From Octopus sinensis (lineage: Eukaryota), in assembly GCF_006345805.1 (NCBI RefSeq), contig NC_043000.1, positions 11,408,001 through 11,472,000 on the forward strand: a stretch of DNA of 64,000 bases. The letters are read 5' to 3'. Made by a program: the position numbers and the translations under genes. Positions 466-63,430 of this stretch are shown here, piece after piece. Positions within the stretch are counted from its first letter, which is position 1. Each line of letters starts with the position of its first letter. Below the pieces are notes generated by a model. That model did no database searches, was not told where the DNA came from, and worked only from the letters and a program-made list of their open reading frames with translations.

Positions 466-2457
466 TTAACAACAACCACAACAACAGCAGCAGAGGCAGG
501 TGACCACTAGAGCTGCAAAAGCAACAGCAACATCTATCAAGCAACAACAAGAACAACAACAATGGCAAACAGAACAAAGAATTCACCAACATTTATGGTT
601 TCCACACAGCAAACAGCAGCAAAAACAACATCAGAACACTCCAAAACAACAACTTTATCAATAGAACAACAACAAAAAGTCCTACAAATTTGTCCCTCAC
701 CTATCAGGGCAGCCAGGCGTGTCCTGCACTGGAATGGTGCTGACAAAAGAGTCTGAATGGCAAAAGGTCAACAGGTGAAACAACAACACAAAAATCTGAC
801 AGGTAGGATCAGAGGTGGGAAACACCTTTGAAAACAAATTGACAAATATTTCCACCGACAGCAGTCACACTAGAGCCGTCAACAACAACAATGATCACTA
901 CCGTCGACACCACCCTCACAAGCACAACCCAATTCACACACACAACTCTCAAATGTCTCAACACCAGCAAAGGTCAAACATTCTGAACTACACAGCAATA
1001 AACACAAACAATAAAGACCCAAGGGGTCACACACATAACCATACAGACATCACACACACACCAACACACATAGGGGTCATCCAAACATCACAAGACTCAA
1101 CACTGTAAAAGCTAAACATCCTGACGGAGTAGGGGCCTTTGGAAGAGACATCAATAAAAGACTATATAAAGAAACATCCATATATATATATATACCTATT
1201 TCGTTACTACCCACAAGGGGCTAAACACAGAGGGGACAAACAAGGACAGACAAACGGATTAAGTCAATTACATCGACCCCAGTGCATAACTGGTACTTAA
1301 TTTATCAACCCTGAAAGGATGAAAGGCAAAGTCGACCTCGGCGGAATTTGAACTCAGAATGTAAAGACAGACGAAATACCTATTTCTTTACTACCTATAA
1401 GGGGCTAAACACAGAGAGGACAAACAAGGACAGACAAATGGATTAAGTCAATTACATCGACCTCAGTGCATAACTGGTACTTAATTTATCAACCCTGAAA
1501 GGATGAAAGGCAAAGTCGACCTCGGCGGAATTTGAACTCAAATGTAAAGACAGACAAAATACCGCTAAGCATTTCGCCCGGAGTGCTAATGTCTCTGCCA
1601 GCTTGCCGCCTTGAAACATCCATATATACCAATGAGGACGGAACATCCATCCCCACAAAAGTACTGTGAGTAACCTTTTCTACTTCTGTAGTCTAACCCG
1701 ATATGACCTTGTTCAGAATAGGCAGTATAAATGCATGTGGCCTCAGTTGCCTTGGAAACAGGGCCATCTACTCAATGACCTCAGGTCACTAAGTGTTGAT
1801 GTCGTGGCCATCAGTGAAACCAGACTTTCTGGCCATTTTCGGTAGATACACGACCTATTTATCTCCATGTCAACCAGGAATGCGAGGTGAAACTGCAGTG
1901 TTTTTCCAGAGAGGCCTATCTTCGTAGACCCTCAAGGTAAGTTGGTGATACTGGACATGAACAGTAGTGACAGGGGTGTCCACAGACTGGTGGCTGTTTA
2001 TGCTCTGACAGGAGCAAGACCTTTAATGTTAGTGGATGACTGAAATACTGTCTTAGAACCACATTTCGATTATGTGGGGCTAGCAGACAGAAGAGGGGGT
2101 GTTAATAGCCTCGCAAACCTGTTCAGTTATTTTCAACTATCTGACAGAAACTGACTGGGTTTCCCAGATGTGCCAATGTAGAATTGGATGGATCGCATCG
2201 GGTCACACAGATTGTATCTAGACAAGGTATCCTGTAGGGCAGTAGCTAAGGATAACATAAGTTGTCTACTTTTCAAACTAGTTGGCTACACAGACCACAA
2301 ATCTGTCAGCCTAGATAGCTTAGAAGGCAGGGACCCAGTTTCTGGGTCCCTGAACACATAACTCCTGATGTGCCAAGTTTCCAGAGACCAAATTAGAGAA
2401 TTAGTTAAACAGGTGTTGATGGGGGCAATTGTCATCAAGTGGGGGTTTGCCCTGAAA
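466..2457 (+). mobile_element. Degenerate Tx1/L1-clade LINE 5' part (CAA-rich ORF1-like region plus APE endonuclease remnant)
   Basis: From 1703: MTLFRIGSINACGL…, DVVAISETR, …LYLDK…, VGYTDHK, the APE motif order with frameshifts. Assigning 466-1170 to ORF1 is inference. Confidence 0.6.
1195..1612 (-). mobile_element. tRNA-derived SINE (family C), internal dimer
   Basis: Two tandem ~185-bp units; head ggcggcaagctggcaga…gagttcaaattcc (B-box-like); flanking duplication aaacatccatatata. Same family as 55792-56390. Confidence 0.8.
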
Positions 2458-4423: not shown

Positions 4424-4497
4424 TTAGTTAAATGTTTGTGACATATTTTCATTGCTAACGACAAATTCTTCACTGTTACCAAGGAGACAAATTCTCT
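4424..4497 (-). CDS. Candidate last coding exon ((E)RICLLGNSEEFVVSNENMSQTFN*)
   Basis: Acceptor ttttcccacattttccatcag; phase-1 frame runs to TAA at 4426-4424, giving a 300-nt spliced CDS. An alternative terminal exon exists near 169-212. Confidence 0.45.
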
Positions 4498-4676
4498 CTG
4501 ATGGAAAATGTGGGAAAACACCATATCTGCCCAGTGCTTCCCTCCAACAAAATGGTCTTCCACCATTTTTCACCCTATGGACCCTTTTGCTTCCTATTTT
4601 ACTCAGATGGACCCCCCATAACTATTTCATGTTTTTTAAAATCCTATTATATTTTTATAATCAAATATTATTAATA

Positions 4677-4835
4677 AAAAAGCACCCTACCTCACGGAAG
4701 TGGGTTGGCGTTAAAAGGGCATCCAGCTGTAGAATGTAGAAACACTGCCAAATCAGACTGGAGCCTGATCCCCAGTCGAACCGTCCAACACATGCTAGCA
4801 TGGAGAACGGACGTTAAATGATGATGATGATGATG
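4677..4835 (+). mobile_element. 3' tail fragment of the major RTE LINE family
   Basis: …catgctagcatggagaacggacgttaaa(tga)n terminus shared with 14.7, 17.9 and 49.7 kb. Confidence 0.8.
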
Positions 4836-5211
4836 AATTATATTGAGAAAAGCTGATAAAATACATTATGTTCTGTAAGACTGTAACCAATTAATTGTGC
4901 ATAAATTTTAACAACAAAACCCTATATTGGACCCCCAAAAGCTGTACTAACTCCAGTTGAAAACCCTTCCTCTAATGGAATCCTCAACGGTAACCCTAAG
5001 TGGATTCAGAGCTGCATTTCCATCTAAAGACCGATCATTATCAGTGACTGTGTTGCGCTAGTGAACTGCCTGGTTGTAACAAACATTTAAAGAAATCAAA
5101 AAACTCAGAAACAGTGACTAAAACTTATGATTTAAGTAAAAGAAATAGAAGAAAGATTTAAGAATGAGGTTTCTAGTCACAAACGCTAAACGTGATAGGA
5201 AACCCACTTAC

Positions 5212-5268
5212 CAGGTCTGCTAGTAGCAGAAGATCCACCACAGCTTGTAATGTTTCCACATTCACCAC
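5212..5268 (-). CDS. Coding exon 4 ((G)GECGNITSCGGSSATSRP)
   Basis: Acceptor ttttttgttcttatag, donor gtaagt, 57 nt, phase 1-1, open frame. Confidence 0.7.
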
Positions 5269-5416
5269 CTATAAGAACAAAAAATTTGGATATATTGCCT
5301 ATTATAAAACTATAAGCAATTAATTAAACAGAAATTTTAGCAACAAAATCCCAAATTGACCCCCAGCAGCCATATCAACACTAGAAGCAAAGTACAGCTC
5401 TAGTGGACCCCCTGAT

Positions 5417-5800
5417 TCTCTTACTCTTTTCAGTCATTTGACTGCGGCCATGCTGGAGCACTGCTTTTAGTCGAGCTAATCGACCCCAGGGCTTATTCTT
5501 TATACTTATTCTATTGGTCTCTTTTTGCCGAACGGCTAAGTTACGGGGACGTAAACACACCAGCATCGGTCGTCAAGCAACGTCGGGGGAACAAACATAG
5601 ACACACAAACACATATATATACATATACATATATGCGACGGGCTTCTTTTCAGTTTCTGTCTACCAAATCCACTCACAAGGCTTTGGTCGGCCTGAGGCT
5701 ATAGTAGAAGACACTTGCCCAAGGTGCCACGCAGTGGGACTGAACCTGGAACCATGTGATTGGTAAGCAAGCTACTTTCTACACAGTCACTCCTGCACCT
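5417..5800 (-). mobile_element. tRNA-derived SINE (family B)
   Basis: Head with A/B-box-like motifs, body gcaccttgggcaagtgtc…gaagcccgtcg, tail …gactgaaaagagtaagag. Other copies at 8935-9310, 11115-11355, 12192-12556, 15826-16030, 17924-18306, 53655-54062, 57146-57515. Confidence 0.85.
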
Positions 5801-5949
5801 TTATAGTATTATAAAACTATAAGCAATTAATTAAACAGAAATTTTAGCAACAAAATCCTAAATTGACCCCTAGCAGCCATACCAACACTAGAAGCATAGT
5901 ACAGCTCTGGTGGACCCTCCGATTTGTATTTCTGGCTCATTAGCCTGCC

Positions 5950-6421
5950 TTAACCCTTTTGTTAGTGTATTTTGAGATGCTGTGTTTCTTTCAATTACTT
6001 TAAATATAACAAAGTATTTAGTGAAATAATTATCATTTAAGCTAGTGTTAGGAACATAAATTGTGACTAAGGTTTGATGGAAGATTTTAATTCAAAACTT
6101 ATGCAAACAAGACATTTGTACCACAGAGCCAGAGCCGGTTTCAGCCGGGTTGGTATCAAAAGGGTTAAGAATTGTTTCTCTATTATATATTTTTAACCCT
6201 TTCGTTACCATATTCTGTTGAGATGCTATGTGTTTCTTTCAATTAATTTTAAATATAACAAAGAATTTAGTAAAATAACTCAGTTATCATTAAGCTAGTG
6301 TTAGGAACATAAATTGTGACTAAGGTTTGGTGGAAGATTTTAATTAAAACCTTAAGAAAACAAGACATTTGTACAACAGAATTGGAGCCGGTTTCAGCTG
6401 GGTTGGTAACTAAAGGGTTAA
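5950..6421. mobile_element. Tandem pair of ~225-bp piggyBac-type MITEs
   Basis: Each unit is TTAA-CCCTTT(c/t)GTTA…TA(a/t)C(g/a/t)AAAGGG-TTAA (TIRs with TTAA ends), joined by a ~25-bp linker. Confidence 0.85.
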
Positions 6422-6666
6422 TGGTAAACTCCAAAGAAAGGTAACCCTGGGTGGATTCAAAACAGTTATTTTTTTCTGAAAGACAGTCACTATTGGTAAC
6501 TGAGTTGTGCTAGTGAACTGCTTGGTTGGAATAAAAATTTAAAAGATTAAAAAAACACAAACAAAGCAATGACTAAATTCTATGAGTTAAGAGAAAGAAA
6601 CAGCGGATAGGATTCAAATGAGCACCCAATTTAAAGGATTCAAAAAGGGTTTATTAACTTTTTTAC

Positions 6667-6720
6667 CATTTCGGGAACCTTCGGTTTCATCTGCTTTTAT
6701 GCCTGGACCCGGTTTGACTT
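6667..6720 (-). CDS. Probable coding exon 3 ((E)VKPGPGIKADETEGSRN)
   Basis: 54 nt, phase 1-1, open frame. Acceptor …ctttcacaataaatgtag and donor gtaaaa are weaker. The 3' end of the exon and the downstream intron are homologous to exon 2. Confidence 0.5.
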
Positions 6721-6788
6721 CTACATTTATTGTGAAAGATGCAAAAAATAAAATTCTGATTTCAGATTTTACATTTGATGAACAGGAA

Positions 6789-6844
<56 letters not shown>

Positions 6845-7202
6845 TAGATAGATTCCTGTTCATCAAACGTAATCTGAAATCAGAATTGTCTTTTTTGTGA
6901 ATTTTCTATCCAAAATCCAATCAAAAGCCTGAAACTTGATACGTCAATTAAATGCCAGCTAGCTGTATGTGATTAGTCGGAGATTTGGACAGTATTTGCG
7001 TGTATGTGTGCGCACAGGCAACTGTATATGCATATACTAGCACTATGACCCAGCGTTGCCAGGTCAAAGTGCTAGTATTTACTATTTCTGTTACAATAAT
7101 TAAATAGTAATTATAGCCCAGGGACAACCAAAGCTTTGTGAGTGGATATGGTATAGAGGGATTGATAGAAAGAAGACGCCATTTTGCACACCTACAAACA
7201 TC

Positions 7203-7248
<46 letters not shown>

Positions 7249-7251
<3 letters not shown>

Positions 7252-8038
7252 TCAGCCGAAATTGTGAAGATGATCCAGTTCTTGACTGATGACTGAGAGC
7301 TTCGAAAGTCCCGTCCGTGTTTTTTGTGTCGTCTTCTAAATGTTTCACGTTCTTGTCCCAGTTTGTATATTTTTTAAACTTTTACATATATTTTTTTGTC
7401 GATAACCATTATAATTTATGCGTCTCAAAATTGGACCAATACGGTAATAACAAATTTTTTAGAGATTTCTATCGGTTTATTTCGAGACGCATAAATTATA
7501 ATGGTTATCGACAAAAAAATTTTTGGTTTCGGCATATTTGGCATTAGAATTTTTCTTCTGCCCTTATCTTGTAAGTTATGTATAAATTTTACCTTTAAAG
7601 GCATTTTTTGATATGCTGGCCATTGATAACATTTTTTTCCCCAAAAAAATTTTATCCTATATTAATTATAAATAGATTAGTGTTCATTTCCGGATTCTAT
7701 CACTCTGTGAAAGTTTCTGGTTCGAATCACACGTGTCTCGAGGTGCGCCGAAGATTTTTCTGTTTTGGATATATTTGGGGTACTTAAGTCTGCTCAGGAC
7801 TTAGTGCTTGCTTTTTCCGTGGGTATGAGTAAGTATTTCATTTATATCTCGCGTATTTGCCGCTGAAGAGGGGAAAATTTCTTATGAATTAACCCCGAAA
7901 TTGGACCAATACAGTAATAACGAATTTTGTAGAGATTTCTATCAGTTTATTTCGCGACGCATAAATTATAATGGTTATCAACAATTTTTTGTTTCAGCAT
8001 ATTTGGCATTAGAATTTTTTCTTCTGACCTTATCTTGT

Positions 8039-8042
<4 letters not shown>
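7249..8042 (+). mobile_element. Probable Penelope-like (pLTR-derived) element between (TA)n runs
   Basis: Direct repeat 7431-7575 / 7901-8042; inverted 26-mer at 7401-7426 / 7483-7508; contains a hammerhead core at 7857-7915. Confidence 0.5.
7857..7915 (+). ncRNA. Minimal type I hammerhead ribozyme motif
   Basis: gccg CTGAAGA gggg…cccc GAAA ttgg a ccaa TA cagt: intact core, 4-bp stem II, near-palindromic stem III; stem I is imperfect in this copy. Confidence 0.6.
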
Positions 8043-8136
<94 letters not shown>

Positions 8137-8206
8137 CTTACATACCCACACATGTATGTGAGTGTCTAATTTAAAGGATCCAAAAAGGGTTTATTAACTT
8201 TCTTAC

Positions 8207-8281
8207 CACTTTGGATCCCTTTGGTTTCATTTGTATTTTGATATTCATTCCATGTTTGGGGGAGTTCTGCTGCAACAGCTA
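8207..8281 (-). CDS. Coding exon 2 of the putative secreted protein ((L)AVAAELPQTWNEYQNTNETKGIQS)
   Basis: Acceptor ttttttttcattatcacag, donor gtaaga, 75 nt, phase 1-1. Joined to exon 1 it completes a signal peptide (…LCFLAVAA|ELPQ). Confidence 0.75.
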
Positions 8282-8529
8282 CTGTGATAATGAAAAAAAA
8301 AATTGTTTTCAGATTTTACGTTTTATCAACAGGACTATTTACTATTTCTGTTACAGTAATTATATGGTAATTAACAGGAGATCAAGTTACATGTCCCATA
8401 CTGTGGAATTTCAAGAGAGGTTATTGAAAATGTGGTTCTCAGTTCAAACATTAAAAATTATCTACCATTCAAACTGGCCATGTCTAGCCAAAATGTTGCA
8501 CATCATGTTTACATATATATACAAATATA

Positions 8530-8820
8530 TAAGCATATACATATAAACTCTACTGGCATGTGAAAAAACATTTGAGCGAGGTCGTTGCCAGTGCCGCTGG
8601 ACTGGCTCCTGTGCAGGTGGCACATAAAAAGCACAATTTGAGCATGGTCGTTCCCAGTACCGCTTGAGTGACCCTCGTACCGGTGGCACGTAAAAGCACC
8701 CACTACACTCTTGGAATGGTTGGCGTTAGGAAGGGCATCCAGCTGTAGAAAGTCTGCCAGATCAGATTGGAGTCTGGTGCAGCCATCTGTTTTGCCAGAC
8801 CTCAGTCAAATTATACAAGC
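8530..8820 (+). mobile_element. RTE LINE 3'UTR fragment
   Basis: ggtggcacgtaaaagcacccactac…gggcatccagctgtagaaa modules. Confidence 0.75.
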
Positions 8821-9133
8821 AGACATTAACTGATGATATATATATACTCACACACATATATACATATGTATACACAAATATATATATATACACACACACA
8901 CATACATACGTATATATATATATATATAAATACATTACTGTTTTACCTGTTTCAGTCATTTTGACTGCGGCCATGCTGAAGCACCGCCTTTAGTCGAGCA
9001 AATCGATCCCAGAACTTATTCTTTGTAAGCCTAGAACTTATTCTATTGGTCTCTTTTGCCGAACCGCTAAGTTACAGGGGCATAAACACACCAGCATCGG
9101 TTGTCAAACGATATTGGGGGGACAAACACACAC

Positions 9134-9166
<33 letters not shown>

Positions 9167-9311
9167 CATACACACACACATATATACGACGGGCTTCTTT
9201 CAGTTTCCATCTACCAAATCTACTCACAAGGCTTTGGTTGGCCCGAGGCTATAGTAGAAGACACTTGCCCAAAGTGCCACGCAGTGGGACTGAACCCGGA
9301 ACAATGTGGTT

Positions 9312-9400
<89 letters not shown>

Positions 9401-9664
9401 ATATATACACTTTGAAAATCCTGGTTGTCAGAACCCATTGATTCTTAAATGTTTTGAGACTGTCAAAATGATGATGATGATCATCATCATCATGATAGAA
9501 GCACTGTTGTAATACAATTGTAGCCATATTGGCTAAAACCAAATAAATAACACAACATATTTATAAAAACAAAAATGACAAAAAAGCACCGAAAATTCTT
9601 CGCTTAGTTAATGCAAATGATGTTTGAAACAATTATTTCGTAAAAAAAAAATGTTAAAAAGGAT

Positions 9665-10146
9665 TTAACCCTTTTGTTACCATATTTATTTTGAGATGCT
9701 CTGTGTTTCTTTAAATTAATTTTAAATATAACAAAGAATTTAGTAAAATAACTTAGTTATCATTAAGCTAGTGTTAGGAACATAAATTGTGACAAAGGTT
9801 TGGTGGAAGATTTTAATTCAAAACTTATGAAAACAAGACATTTGTACCACAGAGCCAGAGCCGGTTTCAGCTGGGTTGGTATCAAAAGGGTTAAGAATTG
9901 CTTCTCTATAATATATTTTAACCCTTTTGTTACCATATTCTGTTGAGATACTCTGTGTTTCTTTCAATTAATTTTAAATATAACAAAGAATTTAGTAAAA
10001 TAACTCAGTTATCTTTCAGCTAGTGTTAGGAACATAAATTGTGACAAAGGTTTGGTGGAAGATTTTAATTCAAAACTTATGAAAACAAGACATTTGTACT
10101 ACAGAGCCAGAGCTGGTTTCAGGCGTGTTGGTATCGAAAGGATTAA
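9665..10146. mobile_element. Tandem pair of the same piggyBac-type MITE
   Basis: Same TIRs, TTAA ends and linker as 5950-6421. Confidence 0.85.
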
Positions 10147-10182
10147 GAAAGAAAATAAAATTAAAAATTAAAAAAAACTTAC

Positions 10183-10222
10183 AGAAACATAATGCACATA
10201 GACAGATGAATAACTTTCTCAT
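10183..10222 (-). CDS. First coding exon of a putative small secreted protein (MRKLFICLCALCF, signal-peptide start)
   Basis: Minus strand reads tttttttatttttacag|atc ATG aga aag tta ttc atc tgt cta tgt gca tta tgt ttc t|gtaagt: strong polypyrimidine acceptor, ATG 3 nt into the exon, consensus donor, phase 1. Confidence 0.75.
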
Positions 10223-10404
10223 GATCTGTAAAAATAAAAAAAATGAAATCTGATCACCAGAGTATGACCGATGTAATGAACTATTGATATTTACTTTTAC
10301 AAAGGTGGTGAGCTGGGTAAATGGTCAGCTTGCTGGACAAAATGCTTGGAGGCATTCCATCAATATTTACATTCTTGGTCCAAATTCTGCCAAGTTAAGT
10401 TAAG

Positions 10405-33800: not shown

Positions 33801-36800
33801 AGAAAGAAGAAATTATCAGCACATAGGGACGAATTATTACGAGATAGGACTAAAAAGATTATATATATATACATATATATAATGGCGAAGTTTTGATTCA
33901 AAGGAAAGAAAGAAGAAATTATCAGCACATAGGGACGAATTATTACGAGATAGAACTAAAAAGATTATATATAATATACATATATATAATGGCGAAGTTT
34001 TGGATTCAAAGGAAAGAAAGAATAAATTATCAGCACATAGGACGAATTATTACGAGATAGGACTAAAAAGATTATATATATATACATATATATAATGGCG
34101 AAGTTTTGATTCAAAGGAAAGAAATACGACGACCACCATCATCACCACTACTAGCACCGACCACCCGCTGCCACTAACCCCGCCTCCACCACCACCATAC
34201 TAATGCCTCTGCTCTCTCCTTTTGGCTACTAATCCATTACAGGATAAAAATTTATCAATGCCACATATTAAAAAATACCTTTAACTCGCCTTCGATTATC
34301 ATTATTAGTTAATAGTTTGCGAAAAATCACTTGCTTACCTTACAGCAGTGATTTCCAACCATGGTTCCGCAAGAAGTTACAAAACTGCTAAAATTGGCAG
34401 TAATGGGTTCCGCTCCAGTAAAAGTTTGAAAAGCACTGCCTTATGAGGTGTTCATTTCATCATCACATCAGACGATTCGAGTTCACTTGGCGTCTGCGCA
34501 AGAGGCGGTACCATAGACATGAGGGTTATCCGGCGTGTTATTGCTAGTGAAAACTATTTGGCGACGAATGACTCAAAAATGCGGTTAGCAGTATTATCTA
34601 ATTAAAAGTTCAAGAATGTTTTTTTTTTTAGAGATTCATAAAATGCTTTGTATATAATGGCTACGCAATAAATGTTATAGATGTGTATATAAATTAGGGT
34701 TAAGGTGGATTTTAAAATAGAATCACGGAGACTAGTTGTAACCGACTACTTTCTTTCCATTGCATGGATTGTTTTTTTTTATTAAGGGATTGTATTATAA
34801 AATGCCATCACAAGTGGTTAGGGAATTATTAGCCGTACAGCCAAATTAATAAATATATACATACAATATAGACTTGTACAATATATATACAAGGGTACTA
34901 CATGAGTACCTATATCGCTAATTAAGAAGTTAAAAAATACTTCTGTACCCCGAGAAGTCACAATCTATTACATATATATAGATATATATAGTATATATCT
35001 ATATATATATATATATATATTCTATATATATAACATGTGTATATTTAGGGCTAAAGATCACAAACGATCAGCGAACACCAGACATAGATCGTTTGTGATC
35101 TTCTTCTAGCATATGGCTATCCACCTAGGGTTTTTTTAGACCTACATATACACATGTATATATTATTTATTTATGATATATATCTATATATAGTATATAT
35201 ATATATATATATTATAGTAATATATGTATAATATGTATGTATGTATGTGTGTGTGTTTGTGTATAGATTTGTGACTTTTCGGTGGTACAGATTATTTTTT
35301 ACTTCTATAACTAGCTATATAGGTACCTGTATACCGGTATACGATTAATTCTTGATTTTTATATAATTTTCATCTGTCTTGCCCGCCTATATTCCGGTGT
35401 TCGCTGTGGTTAAACAAGTCGTATTAATGTATGTGACACGTTTCGATTCCGATGGAGATTGTTACCCTTCAATAAGTTGGTTTAACCACTGATCAGTCCT
35501 GATAAGAACATTCCACATGTGACTATTTTTGAATGAGTTTGCAGCAAAAAAAAATCATTTTCGAGGTTGAGGATTACGTAATATGCTTCAAACAATCTAG
35601 GAGAAAAAAAAGTGAAAAATGCTAATATTTTGGAATTAAAAGGAGCAAAGTCTAAAAGAGGAAGGATTGCTCCAGACACTTCCAATTTTTTTTGTCTAAT
35701 CTTCTTACTACCATAATCATAATGTACATCCTCTAAAATGTATCTCTTTAGAATTTGGTGAACGAATATATATTTGTCAGGAAGTTATTGAGGAAACAAA
35801 TTTGGGGAGCGCTAAACTGCAGTTGTGTCCATATATATCATCATAATCATCGTCATCGTTTAACGTCCGTTTTCCGCGCTAGCACGGGTTGGACGGTTCG
35901 ACCGGGGTCTGGGGAGCCAGGGGCTGCCCCAGGCTCCAGTCTGGTCTGGCAGTGTTTCCACAGCTGGATGCCCTTCCTAACGCCAACCACTCCGCGAGTG
36001 TAGTGGGTGCTTTTTACGTGCCACCTGCACCAGTGGAGGCTGCACTGGCAACGGCTACGTTCGGATGGTGCTTTTTATGTGTCAAACCGGCACAGGTATC
36101 ACAACTACTACTGTTTCCATTGATATTTGGTTCGATTCTCATGTACAGCACTTGACTCAACAGGTCTCCTCAGCACAGCGAGATGTTCCGGTACGGCACT
36201 TGACTCCAACAGTCTCCTCAAGCACAGCGAGATTTTCCGGGATCCCACGATCGGTTTGGTTTGTGCACCGGCACAGAAGCCATTCGAGGCGGGTTGGCAT
36301 CGGTCACGTTCGTATGGAGCTTTTAGGCGGGGTGGCATCGGTCACGTTCGGATGGAGCTTTTTTATGTGCCACCGGCACAGAAGCCAGTGGAGGCTGCAC
36401 TGGCAACGCCACGTTCGGATGGTGCTGGCGGGTTGGCATCGTTCACGTTCGGATGGAGATTTTTATGTGCCACTGGCCCAGAAGCCAGTGGAGGCTGCGC
36501 TGGCAATGGCCATTTTCGGATGGTGCTTTTTATGTGTCACCGGCACAGGTATCACACTACTACTGTTTTCCATTGATATTTGGTTCGATTCTCATGTACA
36601 TGTACATGCACTTGACTCAACAGGTCTCCTCAAGCACAGCGAGATGTTCCGGGATCCCACGATCGGGTGGTGAGCCACACGCATAACTTTGCTATCTTAT
36701 GTAAGAATGTATTATCACTTTTAATGATGCAGGATCTTTTCCTTTTGAACGGCACTTTGTTACATAATTTCTAGGTAACTAAAAAGTTTTAAACTTCGTA

Positions 36801-41629: not shown

Positions 41630-44600
41630 TCATAATCATCGTCATCGTTTAACGTCCGTTTTCCGCGCTAGCACGGGTTGGACGGTTCGACCGGGGTCTG
41701 GGGAGCCAGGGGCTGCCCCAGGCTCCAGTCTGGTCTGGCAGTGTTTCCACAGCTGGATGCCCTTCCTAACGCCAACCACTCCGCGAGTGTAGTGGGTGCT
41801 TTTTACGTGCCACCTGCACCAGTGGAGGCTGCACTGGCAACGGCTACGTTCGGATGGTGCTTTTTATGTGTCACCGGCACAGGTATCACAACTACTACTG
41901 TTTCCATTGATATTTGGTTCGATTCTCATGTACATGCACTTGACTCAACAGGTCTCCTCAAGCACAGCGAGATGTTCCGGTACGTGCACTTGACTCAACA
42001 GGTCTCCTCAAGCACAGCGAGATGTTCCGGGATCCCACGATCGGTTGGTGTGTGCCACACCGGCACAGAAGCCATTCGAGGCGGTTGGCATCGGTCACGT
42101 TCGATGGAGCTTTTAGGCGGGGTTGGCATCGGTCACGTTCGGATGGAGCTTTTTATGTGCCACCGGCACAGAAGCCAGTGGAGGCTGCACTGGCAACGGC
42201 CACGTTCGGATGGTGCTGGCGGGGTTGGCATCGGTCACGTTCGGATGGAGATTTTTATGTGCCACTGGCCCAGAAGCCAGTGGAGGCTGCGCTGGCAATG
42301 GCCACGTTCGGATGGTGCTTTTTATGTGTCACCGGCACAGGTATCACAACTACTACTGTTTCCATTGATATTTGGTTCGATTCTCATGTACATGTACATG
42401 CACTTGACTCAACAGGTCTCCTCAAGCACAGCGAGATGTTCCGGGATCCCACGATCGGGTGGTGAGCCACACGCATAACTTTGCTATCTTATGTAAGAAT
42501 GTATTATCACTTTTAATGATGCAGGATCTTTTCCTTTTGAACGGCACTTTGTTACATAATTTCTAGGTAACTAAAAAGTTTTAAACTTCGTATACTGGTA
42601 GAATGTGTTTATAAAACATCATTTTCTCTTGGCTTTATTGAGAAAATTCTATATGTTGTAACATATTTCGTCTTTAATTTCGAGCATTTCGGCAATTTTA
42701 ACCAATCGCTGACCTCCATTTAGGTAAGTAACATTCTGTGCATAATGAATTTGTCCCTCCTTTAAGAAACAGATTGGGTTTATTTACATTTGCGAAGAAA
42801 AAAGATACCCTTCCCCCACCCCTAACCCTAACACTAACTCTAACCCTAAATCTAAAATAGATTGAAATGCAGGAAGCAGCCCGGGTCTTTGCAGTCACAG
42901 CATATCTCCAGAGATCTCGGTCCTTCGTCATTGCCTCTGTGAGGCCCAATGCTCTGAGGTTATGCTTGACTACCTCATCCCATGTCTTCCTGGGTCTACC
43001 TCTCCCCCGATACCTTCAACTGTTTGGGAGCGGCACTTCTTCACATATCTCTCCTCATCCATCCACAGTACATGACCATACCATCGCAAGCGTCACTCTT
43101 GCACACCACATCTGATGCTTCTTATGTCCAGCATTTCTCTCAGGGTGCTTACACTCTGTCGTGCGTGCACACTGACATTAAACATCCAGCGGATCATGTT
43201 AGCTTCATTTCTTTCAAGTCTACGCATATCCTCTGCAGTCACAGCCCATGTTTCACTACCGTGAAGCATGGCAGTTTGTACACATGCATCATACAATCTA
43301 CCTTTCACTCTGAGCGAGAGACCCTTTGTCGCCAGTAGGGGTAGGAGCTTTCTAAACTTTGCCCAGGCTATTCGTATTCTAGCGGTGACACTCTCTGAGC
43401 ATCCACCTCCACTACTAACTTGGTCACCTAGGTAGTGGAAACTATCAACTACTTCTAGTTTCTTCCCCTGGAGTATGATAGAATCTGTTTTCTGAGTATC
43501 TGTGTGATGTTATTGTCCCTGTGCATCTGCCGCACATGAAAGCTATCTTATCAGTTAATTTCCCTTTGATGTTGCTGCACCTCTTATGCGTCCATAGCTT
43601 ACACTGGGTACATCTTATGGAGTTTCTACCTACACCTTTCCTACAGATCGAGCAGGGCCACCTGCCCGAGGGTGTGTGTGCTGAGTTCGTCTCTCTGCTT
43701 ACTATAACTTTGGTCTTTGCTACATTTACTCTAAGGCCCTTTGATTCTAACCCTTGCTTCCACACCCAAAATTTCTTTTCTACTTCCGGTAGTGATTCTG
43801 CCATGAGAGCCAGGTCATCAGCATAGAGGAGCTCTCAGGGGCAACCTGTTTTGAATTCCTCTGTTATTGCCTGGAGGACTATGATGAATAAAAGGGGACT
43901 TAGGGCTGAACCTTGGTGTACACCTACTTCTACCCGGAATTCTTCACTATATTCATTGCCAATCCTAACCTTGCTGACAGCCTCTCTGTATAGGGCCTGT
44001 ACAGCCCTTATTAGCCATTCATCAATCTCCAGTTTCCGCATCGACCACCAGATAAGGGATCGGGGGACCCTGTCAAAGGCTTTCTCCAAGTCTACAAAAG
44101 CTATGTAGAGGGGTTTATCTTTAGCTAGGTATTTCTCCTGCAGTTCTCGAACCAGGAATATAGCATCAGTGGTGCTTCTACCTGGCACAAAACCGAACTG
44201 CATCTCATCTAAGCAAATTCTCTCCCTAATGAGATGGGTTATGACCCTCTCTGTGACCTTCATCACCTGATCCAACAGTTTAATACCCCTGTAGTTATTT
44301 CTATCTAGAGCATCACCTTTACCCTTGTAGCAGTTGACTATGGTGCTGCTATGCCAGTCATTGGGTATGACTCCATTATGAACCACCTGGTTTACAATGC
44401 GGGTGACGAGTCCATAGCCCACACAACCAGCTGTTTTAAGCATCTCAGCAGTGATTCCTGATGGGCCGGGGGCTTTCCTGGTTTCATACCCTTAATTGCC
44501 TTAACTACAAGGGAGCTGTCTATTTGGATAGCTGGTCCCTCTACTGGTCAACATTTGGCAGGCTCTCCTCCTCCTATTCATTCTCCACATTCAACAGTCT

Positions 44601-55204: not shown

Positions 55205-55320
55205 GGAAAGCTGTGATTGGCTGCTTGGAACTATGGCGCGAAAATAAACGGAGGCAAATCGCGCCAAGTGATAACCAGCGGTGCGAACGTAGTAGAGACC
55301 AACGTGTCAGCCAATCGAAT
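55205..55320. promoter_or_regulatory. Possible promoter (two CCAAT boxes and E2F-like sites in a CpG-retaining stretch)
   Basis: ATTGG 55216-55220, TGGCGCGAAA 55234-55243, TCGCGCCA ~55259-55266, CCAAT 55311-55315. Motif matches only. Confidence 0.35.
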
Positions 55321-55791
55321 TAGTGTTTACAACAATGTTGAACTAGCCGAAGATGTTTGTAATCTCGACCGAGGTTATTCTTAATACTCTTCTCAAACAG
55401 TGAAGATAGCAATGAGAGACGATATTGCTACAGCTGCAAGAGTAGTTGAGCGTCGCACTTGGTAGTTTTATTTCTCCTCTTTTTGACGTTGACCTATGAT
55501 CAAAAGTATTCTAAAATACAATATTATATGATGTAGTCGTTTTTAATTAATCGTTTATTTTTTTTAAGGTGCTGCGGTGTGATTTAACATAAGTTTGATT
55601 GCTATTTCTAACAAGTTGAGTGGCTGGGTAGGTGGAGTGGCAAGGCCCTGTTGATTGGTACGTCATCATCATTTAAAATTCCTTTTCCATGTTGGTATGG
55701 GTTGGGCGTTTCAACAGCAGCTAGCAAGCTGGAGGGCTACACCAGGCCAATGCCCTTTCTAATGCCAACCACTATACAGTGTACTGAGTGC

Positions 55792-56390
55792 AAGGCGGTG
55801 CGCTGGCAGAAACATTAGCATGCTGGGCGAAATGCTTAGCGGTATTCTGTCTGACCTTACATTCTGGGCTCAAATTCCGCCGAGGTCAACTTTGCCTTTC
55901 ATCCTTTCGGGGTCGATAAATTAAGTACCAGTTACGCACTGGGGTCGATGTAATCAACTTAATCCGTTTGTCTGTCCTTGTTTGTCCTCTCTGTGTTTAG
56001 CCCCTTGTGGGTAGAAAAGAAATAGGTATTTCGTCTGCCGTTACGTTCTGGGTTCAAATTCCGCCGAGGTCAACTTTGCCTTTCATCCTTTTGGGGTCGA
56101 TAAATTAAGTACCAGTTATGCACTGGGGTCGATGTAATCAACTTAATCCCTTTGTCTGTCCTTGTTTGTCCCCTCTGTGTTTAGCCCCTTGTGGGTAGAA
56201 AAGAAATAGGTATTTCGTCTGCCGTTACGTTCTGGGTTCAAATTCCACCGAGGTCGACTTTGCCTTTCATCCTTTTGGGGTCGATAAATTAAGTACCAGT
56301 TACGCACTGGGGTCGATGTAATCAACTTAATCCCTTTGTCTGTCCTTGTTTGTCCCCTCTGTGTTTAGCCCCTTGTGGGTAGTAAAGAAA
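55792..56390 (+). mobile_element. tRNA-derived SINE (family C), internal trimer
   Basis: Head aaggcggtgcgctggcagaaac followed by three ~185-bp units. Degenerate minus-strand copies at ~51870-52335 and 63700-63935. Confidence 0.85.
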
Positions 56391-56659
56391 TATATATTGC
56401 CTTTGTTTCAATAAATTTTGGAAACAATAAAGAATTTAGGGAAAAGACCTTGTCATGGCTAAGCTAGTGTTTGAAACACAAGTTTATTTGAAGTTTTGAT
56501 GGAAAGTTTTTACTTTAGATTTCTTTAAAACAAGGAATTTGTACAATTGAAGCAAAGGCAGTATTGAGTAGGTTTATATAAAAATGGTTAAACCTGGCAG
56601 ATGTTACTATTTTTTATTAAAAACAAAAGGTATATGTGTTTATTTTTTGTCTTTTGCAG

Positions 56660-56889
56660 ATATGGAAACCACAAAAGATTCTGGATCTAACGCAGCAGGA
56701 ACCAGCATGCCCAACTATGCGATAATCATCCTTGCCATAATCAGTGCTTTGCAGCCATTCTTTTTAGAATCTTCTATGTCAATTGAATCAAAATTCACAT
56801 TCTTGCGTAGAGAAAAATATAGAATTACCAACAAAAACAAAGCTGATAAATATGTACAGGTGTTGCAAATGAAGTTTAATTACCAATAG
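56660..56889 (+). CDS. Candidate terminal coding exon with a hydrophobic (TM or GPI-signal-like) segment
   Basis: Acceptor ttttttgtcttttgcag followed by (D)METTKDSGSNAAGTSMPNYAIIILAIISALQPFF…; the frame stays open to TAG at 56887-56889. Upstream exons were not identified. Confidence 0.45.
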
Positions 56890-58226
56890 ACACCGGCCAT
56901 GGCTTCAATCTCATAAGGAACATTTAAACAAGTTGTCATTTTGATTTTCACTTTTCTCCATGCATACAACACTGTATCACACATCCTAGAAGAAAGATCA
57001 ACCTCCACGCTGTTTCTATTTACTCATTTCATTATCAGTTCGTGTACTTCCTATGATATGTTATCTTCTCTTACTTGTCATGCTTGAAGAATAAAATCAA
57101 TTGCAGTCCTGTTTGTTTGTTTTAGTTTTTTTGTTGAAGCATAGGGCGTAGGAGTGGCTGTGTGGTAAGTAGCTTGCTTACAAACCACATGGTTCTGGGT
57201 TCAGTCCCACTGTGTGGCACCTTGGGCAAGTGTCTTCTACTATAGCCTCGGGCTGACCAAAGCTTTGTGAGTGGATTTGGTAGACGGAAACTGAAAGAAA
57301 CCCGTCGTATATATGTATATATATGTTTGTGTGTCTGTGTTTGACAACCGATGCTGGTGCGTTTACGTCCCCATAACTTAGCGGATCGGCTAAAGAGATC
57401 GATAGAATAAGTACTAGGCTTACAAAGAATAAGTCCGGGGGTCGATTTGCTCGACTAAAGGCAGTGCTCCAGAATGGCCACAGTCAAATGACTGAAACAA
57501 GTAAAAGACTAAAAGCCTGGTACTTGTTCTATTGATCTCTTTTGATGAACTGCTAAGTTATGGGCACCAACACCAGTTGTCAAACAGTGAGGAGAGAGGA
57601 CAGAGACAACCCCTCCCCCCACATCTTTGATTATAATTTTATTATGGATTCCTGCTAACGCATGCACCATGACACATACTAACCGTCTAGAGGCAGTACC
57701 TGTGGCACATCTACACATGAATGCCCCGAAGACTTTCTTTCCTCGTAACTTTCAAAAGAATCGATATTTTTAAATGAAATGTTCTATAAATACACTTGAG
57801 ACAGTGTAGATTCCGTTTCTATTAGAATTTGAGAGGACAAAATTTTCTGCCAAAAAATGTCATTTGTATTAATATATATGTGTTTTATACAACCAATTTT
57901 TATTTTCATATTAAATTCCAAAATAATCACAATTTACTCACTCTGGAAGGCATTTGTCGAAATTTTCATTTTTCTCAAAGATATGAGGAAACAAATTTGG
58001 CGGGGCACGTTTGTGTATGTATGCTCATTGCAAACAAGATTCCTTACATTGGGATCAGCCATCTGACATTAATTTTATATGTTGCGGTCGAAATAGAGAA
58101 GAAGCAAATGTTTAGACAGACGAGTTTTTTTCTCAGACAAAAAAATGTTTTATTTAACAACGATGGAAAGAATAACTAAATTACAGAGAAAAAAAAGTAC
58201 AGAAGTAAAGAAACAGCAAAGAATAA

Positions 58227-58613
58227 TCTCTCTCTATATAAACGGAAGTTTGTCTGTGCGTGTTTCTGTGTGTCTGTTTGCTTGTACCCTCACTCTGACC
58301 ACGGCTTTCAACCGATTCTGATGAAACTTGACACACACATAGCCCAATGTCATAATTCAAAACTAACGCAGCGAAAATTTTTAAAAGTTCCCCCAGTTCT
58401 GAAAAAAATCGATAAATTCGACATGGGGTCGAGAATCAAAAAAAATAAACCACAGACTGTCTAGGGGACGCAACTCAACCTTTTTTTACTCTCAAAAAAA
58501 AATTTACCATAATTTTTTTCTATTTTTTTGCTATTTTTTGGCTATAAACTCTCTAAAAATGCTTTATAGTTATTTCCCTTACAAACCTGAGCAACGCCGG
58601 GCGATACTGCTAG
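58227..58613 (+). mobile_element. Non-autonomous Helitron
   Basis: A|TC…GCGATACTGCTAG|T, near-identical to 22982-23362. Confidence 0.85.
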
Positions 58614-58779
58614 TCAGTCTTTAAATATTACATTCGGAAAGTAAATATGTGAGCCTGTAATTAATTTCCCAACAAGAGTTTGTCGTGAAGAGTCACCATA
58701 CAGTTTTGTTAATAAGTTTAAATGATGTGACTAATGAGATGTCAACTCATTGTTTCTCTTACATTTTATTATCGTTGGA

Positions 58780-58813
58780 TGTGTGTATGTATGTATGTGT
58801 GTGTGTGTATGTA

Positions 58814-58844
<31 letters not shown>

Positions 58845-58964
58845 GTATGTATGTCTGTATGTAAGTTTGTATGTATGTATGTGTGCATGCATGCATATAT
58901 GTATATATATATATGTATGTATGCATACATGCATGCATTCATGTATTATGTATATCTATCTATC

Positions 58965-59032
<68 letters not shown>

Positions 59033-60715
59033 TGTATGTATATATATATGTATGTATATATGTATGTGTGTGTATGTATATGTTTGTATGTATGTATGTA
59101 TGTTGTGTGTATGCATGTATGTGTGTATGTATTATATATGTATGTATGTCTGTGTATGTATGTATGTATGTATGTCTATGTATGTATGTGCAGATTTGTA
59201 TGTTTAATGTATGCATTCCCATGCATATAGTCACATATCTAGACATGCTCATATATATTTAAATGATAAACTTCTGGAAAGTTTTACAGATTTTTCCTGT
59301 TCCACTGATGGATTGGATCTGTAGTTTTCGAATTAGCTTTCTCCCTTCTGGTTTTGACAAGCCTATGTATGTATGTATGTATGTATGTATGTATGTATGT
59401 ATGTATGTATGTATGTATGTATGTATGTATGTGTTTATGTATGTATGTATGTATGTGTGTATGTATGTGTTTATGTATGTATGTATGTGTGTATGTATGT
59501 GATTATGTATGTATGTATGTATGTATGTATGTATGTGTGTGTGTATGTATGGGTGGATGTAAGAATAAGCAGTTTTTCCAATAATGTTTTTCCAGTTTTT
59601 CTAATTGAATCGGACTGAGATGAGCAGAATTTCGTAAATGATGCTGTTATCTGAAAAAAAAAAAATGTAAAGAAAAATTTGTTAATGTTTTATGAAGTTC
59701 ACCCTAAATTTCTCAACGAGCATACATGCATACATACAAACATACAAACATACATATGTACGTACATACATACACACACATACATACATACACACATACA
59801 TACATACATACATACATACATACTTACATACATACACACATACATACAAACATACATACATATATACATACATACAAACATACATACATACACACATACA
59901 TACAAACATACATACATACATGCATACATACATACATACATACACAGATACATATACATACATACATACATACAAACATACATACATACATACACACATA
60001 CATACAAACATACATACATACATGCATACATACATACATACACACAGATACATACATACATACATACATACATACATACATACATACATACATACACACA
60101 GATACATATACATACATACATACATACATACATACATACATACATACATACATACATACACACAGATACATATACATACATACATACATACATACAAACA
60201 TACATACATACATACATACATACACACAGATACATATACATACATACATACATACATACATACATACACACAGATACATATACATACATACATACATACA
60301 AACATACATACATACATACATACACACATACATACATGCATACATACATACATACATACATACATACATACACACATACATACATGCATACATACATACA
60401 TACATACATACATACATACATACATACATACATACATACACACATACATACATACATACATACATACATACATACATACATACATACATACACACATACA
60501 TACATACATACATACATACATACATACACACATACATACATGCATACATACATACATACATACATACATACATACATACACACATACATACATGCATACA
60601 TACATACATACATACATACATACATACATACATACATACATACATACATACACACATACATACATACATACATACATACATACATACACACATACATACA
60701 TGCATACATGTATGC
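58780..60715. repeat. Large (TATG)n / (CATA)n microsatellite tracts
   Basis: 58780-59215 and 59365-59550 are (TATG/TA)n; 59720-60715 is ~1 kb of (CATA)n. These produce the long spurious ORFs. Confidence 0.95.
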
Positions 60716-62279
60716 ATGCAGGAAAAGTTCACTGTTATCATTTCATTGCAGGACAGTTTATTGTTATCAGTTCACTGTTTTTTCTTTTTTCAATAAGATA
60801 GTTTTTAACTATTAATGGTGAGATACTATGAATACATTTTCTTGGTAAACTTTCCTCATGGTGAACTTTCCTCGTGGTGAACTTTCCTCATGGTGAACTT
60901 TCTTCATGGTGAATTAATGGTGGTGAACTTACCTGTAATTGTGTGTGTGAATTCACATCAAAGACAATCTGCTCCTAAGAATCATATAAACCAGTACAAT
61001 CAGTAAGTAAACTAGAAACTCTGCTCTAGGGTCTTATGCTGGTGAGTAGAGTGTGACTGGTCACCCTTTCAGAGCAATAAAATACCTGCATGTTTCATCT
61101 GAGGGTGCTCTTTACTGAATGTCTAATGAAATCTGTACAAATTTTGAGACGATTTTTCGTGATATATCATCATATTCATCAGATAGTGTCCATATTCTAT
61201 GCTGACATGGGTTGGACAGTTTAACAAGCTGAAGAACAGCATTGTGCTCTTATTTCTGCTTTAACATGGTTTCTGTGTCTGGATGCTCATCCTCATGCCA
61301 ACCACTTTACAGTATGTACAGGGTGGGTTTTTTTTTCCTAGTTTCCTTTTTTGTGCCACTTGCACTAGTGAGGTAATTATGCAGCTTGTATGATTACAAA
61401 CCCCAAGGGAATCAGCTTTATGCTAGGCAATAAGGAGAAAGGTAAAGTATAGGAGAGAAAAGAGCAGAGCAGAACAGGTTTCTTGTAGAGGAGTTACATG
61501 ACTACTCACATTTTAGAAGAGAGGGTAAGAGTGATTGGATGGAGCTAGAAAGATATAAAAAAAAAATAGCGATGATGTGTCAAGGAATACCTTCAAATTG
61601 GGCAGTGGGGTCAAGGGTGAGTGGGGGAGTAGAGGATGCCTGATAGTGCAGAGTAGCAGAATAGTAATGATGATACAGTAAAGAGAGAGGTGACATGCTG
61701 TTGGGTAGGTAGTAGGTGTGGATGGGGAAGAGAGAAGCAGGCATAGTGTATGAGGAGGGTGAGATCTATGACGGTGGGAGAGGAGAAATTATTTGGTGGC
61801 AACAGTGGGGTCAGGTGATCAATGAAAGTGTGTGTGGAGATAATAGTATTAATGGATGAAGGACGGATAACAAATGAAGTGGTTCTTGGTAGTAAGAAAA
61901 GTGGTATCAAGGAAGAACCGCAGTTTGGGAGGTGATGCTTTGAGATGTCTTGAGGAAGAAGGAAATTGGGTGAAGGGCCCAGCTGTACACACACACACAT
62001 ACACACACAACTCTACCAACAGTTAGTTTCACCAAGGTGGGTAGGTTTTCTTGAGAGTAATATATTACCAGTCATCCTTGTTAAGACTGCATCTCCTCTC
62101 CAGCAACACACTTGTTTCTGCCCTCATTCCTGATCTCTCTCTCTCTCTCTCTCTCTGATGGGGTAATGTTGTATCTCTTTTCAAGCAAGGCACCTGTTTC
62201 TGTCTATCTGTCACATTCTCACCTTTCATCATCTGGCACACAATCATCTCTTCCAATACCTCTCAAAGTTACTTTGATG

Positions 62280-63430
62280 ATCCTGCTTGTGTTGGTGCCA
62301 CATAAAAAGCATCCAGCCCACACTGTAAAGTGGTTGGCATTTGGAAGTGCTTCCAGCTGTAAAAACCATGCGAAAACTGACCTTATCTGTGCTAGTACCA
62401 CGTAAAAAGCACTTAGTCCACTCTGCAGGGTGGTTGGTGCAAGGAAGGGTATCTGGCCATAAAAACTGTCAAAACAGACACTGAAGCATGGTACAACCTT
62501 CTGTCTGGCCAGCTCCTGTCAAACCATCCAAACCATGCATGGAAAGCAGGCGTTAAATGATGATGGTGACAATAATGATCTTGGTCCTTTGTTATTTCCT
62601 CTATGTGGTTCAAGGTCTAGAGATCAGCCTTCACCACTTCATTTCATGCATTCCTTGGTCTTCCCCTTGTGCAAGCTCCATCCACATTCAGTGATTGGCA
62701 CTTCATTACATAGCTGTTCTCATCCTTATGCATTATGTGTCCATACCAGTGCAGTCTTCTTTCTTGCACACTACATTCTGGTTCCTCCTACTAAGACTTT
62801 CATGCACCCTCACTTTACACATCCAATGGAGTATGCTTGCTTCGTTTCTTTCCAGTTTTCTCAAGTCCTCTGCATTCAAGATACATGTCCCACAACCATG
62901 CAGAAAGGCAGTTCTAAAAGGGAAAGATCTTTGCTGTCAGCCAGTGGTAGTAGCTCTCTGAACTTTCTCCGCCCCATCCTTATTCCAGCTACTACACTTT
63001 CAGAGCAAGCACCTCTCTTGCTAATTACACCTTCTAACAAAAGCTATCAATTATTTCTAAGTGAGCCATTCCAGTGTTTAAGAGAAACTATTTTTGTGAG
63101 CTCCAAGTATGTACTGGTCCAGTGCCTCTATCACACATGAAGCCTTGCATTTGCAGACAGTCTGCCTGTCACTCCACTACATTCTTTGTATGTCCATATC
63201 TTATACTGGATACAGTGTATGGAGTTCATACCTACTCTGTTTCTGCATACTGAACAAGACTACTTTCTAGAAGATACCAGGATCCTGTCTTGTTTCCAAC
63301 TTAGTACAAAACCTATGTCTTTGCTACATTTATCTTAAAATCCTCTCAGTTCTCGCTTCCATACCAGGAATTTCTTCTCTAATTCTTCTGTAGATCTAAC
63401 TTTGAATTCTCGAACATCAGCATGCAACTA
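62280..63430. mobile_element. Old degenerate RTE LINE pieces
   Basis: Plus-strand 3'UTR and tail at 62280-62580; minus-strand RT C-terminal remnant at ~62620-63430 resembling 43.0-43.83 kb. Confidence 0.6.

Follow-up and report, generated by a model that had tools for sequence, protein, structure and literature searches.

Identity of five short minus-strand segments

Five short segments on the minus strand of a 64,000-nucleotide (nt) stretch of Octopus sinensis DNA (hereafter the window, placed at about CM016862.1:11,408,001-11,472,000) can be spliced in silico into one continuous reading frame. The locus raises the question of whether these segments form a gene, which of them serve as exons, and what kind of protein they would encode. 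A first-pass annotation, made from the sequence alone, had read all five as a hidden gene for a small secreted glycoprotein. We find that this five-exon reading corresponds to the 5′ third of an annotated micro-exon gene, LOC115211074, and that the products of this gene are probably surface glycoproteins. The five segments are as follows.

10183..10225, minus strand, exon 1: annotated coding exon of 43 nt, encoding I-MRKLFICLCALCF, the first part of the signal peptide
8207..8281, minus strand, exon 2: annotated 75-nt phase 1-1 cassette, LAVAAELPQTWNEYQNTNETKGIQS
6667..6720, minus strand, exon 3: 54-nt phase 1-1 cassette, EVKPGPGIKADETEGSRN, in no annotated isoform of LOC115211074
5212..5268, minus strand, exon 4: annotated 57-nt phase 1-1 cassette, GGECGNITSCGGSSATSRP, the first of three identical tandem copies
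4424..4497, minus strand, exon 5: ERICLLGNSEEFVVSNENMSQTFN followed by a stop codon, rejected as a coding exon

Each segment is preceded by AG, and exons 1 to 4 are followed by the donors GTAAGT, GTAAGA, GTAAAA and GTAAGT, respectively. Re-splicing reproduced exactly the coordinates, the AG and GT sites, the phase-1 joins (4/4 junctions) and the 300-nt coding sequence (CDS) of the first-pass annotation, with its ATG at 10222-10220 and its TAA at 4426-4424. The 99-aa translation was likewise exact; in it the core of the signal peptide is divided between exons 1 and 2, and the three N-x-S/T sequons and the single C-x5-C pair are present as described.

In a protein search the spliced 99-aa peptide matched the O. 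sinensis "uncharacterized protein LOC115211074", which is represented by seven model isoforms (X1-X7, XP_036357657-63) and shares a cluster with the Octopus vulgaris model CAI9722145. The gene itself is already in RefSeq, so it is neither hidden nor new. Positions 1-44362 of the window are the reverse complement of positions 1-44362 of the O. sinensis locus CM016862.1:11343635-11452362, reversed (L001), with 100% identity over 44,362 bases, and coordinates were converted as window position p = L001 position 44363-p. The annotated CDS range of LOC115211074, L001 10001-98728, thus covers window positions 34362 down to 1 and a further 54 kb past the left edge of the window.

Exons 1, 2 and 4 are coding exons of this gene, exact in X1-X7 and in the O. 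vulgaris model, and the junction 10183^8281, which divides the signal peptide between exons 1 and 2, is annotated in LOC115211074. The remaining three proposed junctions (8207^6720, 6667^5268 and 5212^4497) are missing from the annotated isoforms; there, 8207 is joined to 5268. Nor does the gene end at exon 5, as had been proposed, since it runs on for 54 kb past the window to a terminal exon, DMETTKDSGSNAAGTSMPNYAIIILAII, which in the models lies 50-88 kb downstream of the start. In O. vulgaris the gene (L002) is compact, spanning 21 kb, with the same exon order and a clean triplication of ~4.98 kb. No family exons were found within the window beyond those described in this report.

The standing of the individual exons was assessed by a chance scan of 10 kb, in which 265 raw phase-1 symmetric open AG..GT candidates were subjected to a simple splice-quality filter. 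Exons 1, 2 and 4 were the only candidates to pass, if the shared donor of a further annotated exon is set aside. Exon 3 failed the filter, with a polypyrimidine value of 0.55 and the donor GTAAAA.

Cassette layout and the three-locus family

The internal exons of the gene measure 75/72, 54, 57 and 57 nt and are all of phase 1-1, the sole asymmetric exon being an optional one of 52 nt. Exon 2 carries a tandem NAGNAG acceptor at 8278, 3 nt downstream of the first, which gives rise to FSVAA in isoforms X2 and X7. Two further identical copies of exon 4 (GGECGNITSCGGSSATSRP) lie at L001 48079 and 53058 in tandem blocks of ~5 kb, outside the window. Three copies of the 52-nt exon (DSFVS; DSFVSTIPVQDTPGCPD) were mapped across L001, the first of them within the window.

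701..752, minus strand, 52-nt exon, copy 1: cag acceptor, ACTCTTTTG...CCTGATAG, donor gtgagg, peptide DSFVSTIPVQDTPGCPD

The 52-nt exon is included in X4 and X5, where the frame of the terminal exon is shifted and the hydrophobic tail lost. The terminal exon DMETTKDSGSNAAGTSMPNYAIIILAII exists in two variants, one at L001 60276 ending in SALQPFFLESSMSIESKFTFLRREKI and one at L001 98603 ending in INYLAAILLQSMA. A second, diverged gene unit is present at L001 90.7-98.7 kb (90722-98728), also outside the window, and the annotation includes its copies of exon 2 and exon 4, AVAAKVSWNEHQNANETKGIQR and GGECGNITSCGEFSAAIKP, in X6 and X7 as additional cassettes. We observed that cassettes and tail of this second unit are annotated as alternative exons of transcripts that begin in the first (X3, X6 and X7), and that such transcripts would need splicing over ~40-55 kb, including an inverted duplication.

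Relatives were sought by HMMER among 1.84 billion representatives and by word-indexed searching of 5.8 billion clusters; two paralogous genes came to light in the HMMER search and in a profile search. The family recovered comprises three loci on two chromosomes, and no member turned up outside O. sinensis and O. vulgaris. A Pfam search with five family proteins returned nothing above noise, and the first-pass statement that the family could not be recognised was borne out by these searches, in which the proteins behave as orphans. Two weak matches were set aside: P0012, a bacterial repeat protein of 1911 aa, was treated as a chance or low-complexity match, and P0009, a 120-aa protein from a Logan contig with six copies of (N)ITSCGG(S) (E=0.07), is probably of the same kind. 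The heptapeptide of P0009 is the same as that in the GGECGNITSCGGSS cassette, and the protein looks otherwise unrelated.

The paralogs of LOC115211074, LOC115225255 and LOC115225104, are located on O. sinensis CM016885.1, and an O. vulgaris member is CAI9743813. DNA was compared at the LOC115225104 locus (L003), and LOC115225255 was compared as protein models. The paralogous proteins are 40-45% identical, share layout and phase, and have a homologous tail exon, and the paralog intron flanks are 85-94% identical to those of the window gene. In isoform X6 of LOC115225255 the order is signal peptide, AVEAKVVWNAHRNANITKGSQS, EVKLGPDTKADETKDSRN, GGESRTVTSSDGSSTTIRP, DMGTTKEP...FFL, which is the order 2-3-4 proposed in the first-pass annotation. 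Cassettes of the exon-3 type are used one to four times in the paralogs; LOC115225104 uses (DV)EVKPGPDTKADETxGSRN up to four times. The model isoforms, of which there are seven, at least five and at least three at the three loci, differ by their cassettes.

Compared with LOC115211074, the paralogs have a different cassette mix, no Cys in their cassettes and, at the exon-3-type cassette, a full tandem AG/ATGTAG acceptor and a GTAAGA donor. The Cys pair of the GGEC cassette is not conserved in them (GGESRTVTSSDG), and because the paralog cassettes lack Cys, the C-x5-C pair is not a feature of the family.

The gene is thus made up of symmetric phase-1 micro-exons in series, and its interchangeable 54-75-nt cassettes have multiplied as blocks of exon plus intron were duplicated in tandem. 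The isoform set would be generated by cassette skipping, NAGNAG acceptors, alternative tails and the frame-shifting 52-nt exon.

Exon 3 is a cassette with weakened splice sites

The peptide of exon 3, EVKPGPGIKADETEGSRN, is absent from X1-X7 and from the O. vulgaris model. Cassettes of its type are nonetheless coding in LOC115225255 and LOC115225104, and the exon has clear relatives at the DNA level. It is a diverged duplicate of exon 2, as the downstream introns agree at ~95% over their first 45 nt and the exons can be aligned with each other at their 3′ ends (ATGAAACCAAAGGGATCCAAAGTG vs ATGAAACCGAAGGTTCCCGAAATG). It is also ~93% identical to the cassettes used in the paralog, with 3-4/54 positions differing. 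On the basis of this homology to exon 2 and to the paralog cassettes, exon 3 is a real element and not a chance frame.

Alignment with the flanks locates the changes at the splice sites. The CAG/TAG acceptors of exon 2 have become CAA/TAA in exon 3. In LOC115225104 the exon-3-type cassettes read caatAG, then ATGTAG, then AAGTC...AAATG, followed by the donor gtaagaaagtt, and the tandem acceptors 6 nt apart yield DVEVKP and EVKP isoforms. At exon 3 of the window gene the upstream AG is changed to AA (aatAAatgtag), leaving only the downstream acceptor, and the donor is GTAAAA instead of GTAAGA. The copies in the second unit and in O. vulgaris show the same acceptor and donor state. Because the main acceptor AG is lost and the donor is weaker, exon 3 is at best a minor cassette. 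We interpret exon 3 as a cassette whose frame is intact and whose splice sites have weakened, either rarely used or in the course of being lost, and in the mechanism proposed here it would be mostly or always skipped in LOC115211074. Set against the active paralog copies, it would make the recent birth, duplication and decay of an exon accessible to study.

Variable cassettes diverge faster than their introns

Substitutions in the cassettes were counted against those in their intronic flanks. Between units 1 and 2, exon 2 differs at 7/69 exon positions and 16/589 flank positions (10% vs 2.7%, p=0.006), and exon 4 at 7/57 exon positions and 5/599 flank positions (12% vs 0.8%, p=1.5e-5), the changes in exon 4 being five non-synonymous and two synonymous. 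Between the window gene and LOC115225104, the exon-2-type cassette differs at 25/75 exon positions and 10/160 flank positions (33% vs 6%, p=2e-7). The variable cassettes thus diverge 4-15 times faster than the introns, and their changes comprise 11 non-synonymous and 2 synonymous substitutions plus an in-frame 6-nt indel. A 6-nt indel that keeps the frame is likewise seen in exon 1 relative to O. vulgaris and LOC115225104.

The same comparisons gave no excess over the flanks for exon 1, exon 3 and the tail. For exon 3, the accelerated regime of exons 2 and 4 was considered and rejected, as it differs at 1/54 positions vs 8/578 in one comparison, and at 3-4/54 positions vs 7-15% in the flanks in the other. 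Since relaxed constraint is unable to push exons past introns, diversifying selection is the simplest reading of the excess, and the pattern suggests that such selection acts on cassettes predicted to be exposed.

Predicted ends of the protein and its anchoring

Family proteins consist of three parts: a hydrophobic, signal-like N-terminus, a middle made of cassettes, and a tail exon. The N-terminal hydrophobic core, MRKLFICLCALCFLAVAA, reaches a hydropathy of 3.1, and the middle cassettes are rich in N-x-S/T, Ser, Thr, Gly and charged residues. In the tail, a run of small residues (SGSNAAG, GSYAAV or GSNAPG) is followed ~6 residues later by a hydrophobic end of 15-20 residues, with hydropathy peaks of 2.6-3.1. 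A single-sequence AlphaFold model has helices only at the signal peptide and at the tail (106-125), and predicted local distance difference test scores (pLDDT) below 50 in the middle. This result is consistent with a disordered, glycosylated stalk, for which it is not strong evidence.

Small residues at the omega site, a spacer of 5-10 residues and a hydrophobic end form the pattern expected of a signal for attachment of a glycosylphosphatidylinositol (GPI) anchor. The tails suggest that most isoforms are probably GPI-anchored at the cell surface rather than freely secreted. The signal peptide would direct the protein into the endoplasmic reticulum, where the C-terminal signal would be swapped for a GPI anchor, and what would remain at the cell surface is a mature peptide of ~70-90 residues, disordered and glycosylated. 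The first-pass description of a lineage-restricted micro-exon gene for a small, sequon-rich protein with a signal peptide stands; the freely secreted gland or venom type that went with it does not agree with the hydrophobic C-terminus.

The alternative that fares best is a single-pass type I membrane protein or tail-anchored peptide, in which the C-terminus is kept as a transmembrane helix and no GPI anchor is attached. The tail of X1 and X2 (T1) runs on for 23 residues beyond the core, with K and RR among them, and resembles a cytosolic stop-transfer tail; the AlphaFold helix at the tail also fits. In the other four of the five tail variants, by contrast, only 0-9 residues follow the core, none of them basic, and the run of small residues stands at omega-site distance. 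We therefore regard this alternative as rather unlikely. For T1 itself the extended tail makes it more likely that the helix of X1 and X2 stays in the membrane, so that the tail with the charged extension would produce a transmembrane form, alongside the GPI-anchored forms that we favor for most isoforms. X4 and X5, having lost the tail through the 52-nt exon, would be soluble.

The annotated gene start and the case for a functional gene

The first-pass annotation had postulated a non-coding first exon upstream of exon 1. An upstream exon does exist, ~24 kb upstream (L001 10001 = window 34362), and RefSeq annotates it as coding. A second, exon-like segment lies closer to exon 1.

34339..34362, minus strand, E0, the annotated CDS start: ATGGTTGGAAATCACTGCTGTAAG then a gtaagc donor, encoding MVGNHCCK, spliced in phase 0 to exon 1; placed by tblastn of X1
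10295..10355, minus strand, E0', SINE-related exon-like segment: MPPSILSSKLTIYPAHHLCK + A, donor gtaaat, 69 nt upstream of exon 1

E0 sits in a repeat with at least five copies, at minus-strand positions 23421, 27805, 30192, 34362 and 38496, and only the copy at 34362 has the ATG (ATGGTTGGA), the others reading CTGGTTGAAAAT or CTGGTTGAA. Window positions ~22000-45000 form an array of 2.4-4.4-kb repeats, mutually 92-98% identical, which contains E0, and a reverse-transcriptase fragment (Pfam RVT_1, E=1.7e-20) is present on the minus strand at 43835-44443. The array and this fragment together place the annotated gene start in retroelement-rich repeated DNA.

E0' is identical in units 1 and 2 of O. 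sinensis and in O. vulgaris, ~93% identical in LOC115225104, and 71-77% similar to dispersed copies resembling short interspersed nuclear elements (SINEs) at 51996, 55792 and 63843. Its counterpart is the annotated CDS start of LOC115225104. The RefSeq models of that paralog (L003 6001-6179) begin with an ATG in the SINE-like exon MPPSILTSKLTIYPGHHLCK and pass over an intact signal-peptide exon 76 nt downstream (ATGAACTTGACAAAGTTGTTC = MNLTKLFICLFALYF); the start of these models was probably mis-chosen.

Several points weigh against the view that this locus encodes anchored surface glycopeptides with selected cassettes. Few substitutions were counted, and part of the exon excess may come from conserved splicing signals in the introns or from micro-conversion. 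The GPI anchor is predicted from inspection of the tail by eye and from its calculated hydropathy. Part of the locus may be in decay, given the stop in exon 1 of unit 2 (ATGATGTGA) and the origin of the first exon from a repeat. The RefSeq isoforms are computational Gnomon models, and an independent transcript-derived family protein was not found in the NCBI, UniRef and nr collections.

A rival explanation is that there is no functional protein gene here, and that a young, repeat-ridden, duplicating stretch contains a pseudogene family or spurious Gnomon models. The restriction of an orphan family to O. sinensis and O. vulgaris, without a Pfam domain or literature, would fit this explanation, as would the repeat-embedded first exon, the SINE-like E0', the stop in unit 2 and the model of LOC115225104 that starts in a SINE-like exon. 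Against it, the order of signal-peptide exon, phase-1 cassettes and hydrophobic tail is kept at three loci on two chromosomes at 40-45% protein identity, splice sites and open frames are intact and indels are in-frame across loci, and an exon divergence that exceeds that of introns and is mostly non-synonymous is not a pattern given by neutral decay. We consider this explanation very unlikely and retain the surface-glycoprotein reading.

Exon 5 is a chance reading frame

The peptide of exon 5 (ERICLLGN...) is absent from X1-X7 and from the O. vulgaris model. The block that contains exon 5 is repeated, and the other copies (two in O. sinensis and three in O. vulgaris) each contain two added T residues, one following AGAGAA and one preceding TTTAAC, so that entry in phase 1 gives ERILSPW and a stop. 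The disrupted frame in homologous copies that the first-pass annotation had named as evidence against its own model was therefore found in 5/5 copies. An open frame of this length is also at chance level: downstream of exon 4, a phase-1 frame of 24 or more open codons follows 39% of all AGs and 9/30 acceptors with a good polypyrimidine tract. Exon 5 was accordingly rejected as an alternative terminal exon, since the five broken copies, the chance-level open reading frame (ORF) and the lack of any isoform all count against it. It was also rejected as a 75-nt internal exon (AAG, donor gtgggt), which contains stops in every phase.

When window positions 4424-4510 were aligned with L001 48772-49005, L001 53751-53984 and L002, all three differences were single-base differences in homopolymer length, in C, T and T runs. 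Because all differences are of this kind, the open frame of exon 5 in the window may have arisen through an error in long-read assembly. We conclude that exon 5 is a chance open frame in an intron and no coding exon, and the case shows that long-read homopolymer differences can yield a plausible-looking terminal exon.

The first-pass model itself, a minor isoform 1-2-3-4-5 that ends at 4424 and yields a freely secreted 99-aa glycoprotein through an alternative terminal exon that only the first O. sinensis repeat unit would have, is very unlikely, since the good acceptor of exon 5 (polypyrimidine 0.8) with its open phase-1 frame in this copy, and the intact frame of exon 3 with an acceptor homologous to one used in LOC115225255 X6, are outweighed by the absence of both exons from the annotated isoforms of either species and of their peptides from every protein among 5.8 billion clusters, by the homopolymer indels in all other copies of exon 5, and by the loss of the main acceptor AG and the donor +5 G at exon 3.

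Relation to micro-exon genes of other animals

The micro-exon genes (MEGs) of schistosomes are recognised by their symmetric exons, 3-81 bp in length and separated by long introns, and by secreted products that splicing diversifies (bioRxiv 10.1101/2023.06.21.545858), and they undergo accelerated evolution (PMC4350168). With them the octopus gene shares long introns, accelerated evolution, and short symmetric exons placed between a terminal exon and one for a predicted signal peptide; its products are likewise predicted to be small and secreted or at the surface, and in the gene models they vary as cassettes are skipped. It differs in its free-living mollusc host, its GPI-like tail and its far smaller number of exons, and no sequence homology to a MEG family was found by HMMER, in the search of 5.8 billion clusters or with Pfam. 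The octopus family is an analogue of MEGs, not a member.

The small GPI-anchored glycopeptides of vertebrates of the CD24 and CD52 type are made with a signal peptide and a C-terminal GPI signal, and between the two lies a very short and disordered mature part with many N- and O-glycosylation sites. The octopus proteins would resemble them in plan, with an anchor predicted from the tail; they show no homology to them, and the genes of the CD24/CD52 type are neither cassette-built nor spliced in this way.

A wider interpretation can be offered only tentatively. Under it, a young, MEG-like but independent family in octopuses of the O. vulgaris group, with cassettes duplicated in tandem, shuffled by alternative splicing and under diversifying selection, would give rise to variable, tiny surface glycopeptides, GPI-anchored in the main and in some isoforms soluble or transmembrane, with exon 3 rarely used. 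If this is true, the repertoire would perhaps act in the recognition of cells or of self, or in interactions with microbes and parasites. Searches for papers that name the three LOC identifiers or the accessions, or that link micro-exons with octopus, found none, and a MEG-like organisation in a cephalopod family appears to be undescribed so far. What is new here is the description of a three-locus family with multiplying cassettes, alternative anchored or soluble ends and fast-evolving cassettes. Micro-exon genes of such behaviour are best known from parasitic flatworms, and an independent example in a free-living mollusc would mean that this architecture offers a general way of producing surface peptides that evolve fast.

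Duplicated blocks and simple repeats elsewhere in the window

One further family exon lies in the window, on the opposite strand.

56659..56817, plus strand, extra terminal-exon copy: DMETTKDSGSNAAGTSMPNYAIIILAIISALQPFFLESSMSIESKFTFLRREK, with an intact acceptor; inverted relative to the gene

This copy belongs to a block, 55273-63456, duplicated from L001 59.4-75.9 kb and 90-99% identical to it, in both orientations. Its DMETT... exon was considered as the 3′ end of the gene and rejected, as it is on the opposite strand, and hence outside the transcript of the gene, upstream of the gene and within a duplicated block. No other family exons were found on the plus strand, and it looks like an orphan exon.

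Copies of the SINE-like element (with ggttcagtcccactgcgtggcac and ccgtaacttagcggttcggcaaaagagacc) are also present in introns 1 and 3, at 9320-8960 and 5790-5440, flanked by AT and GT microsatellites, and many other (AT)n and (GT)n runs were seen. The stop-free ORFs of 300-380 aa found in several frames on both strands at 59721-60709 are not genes; they are given by a (CATA)n microsatellite of ~1 kb, with 248 copies and 89% matches.

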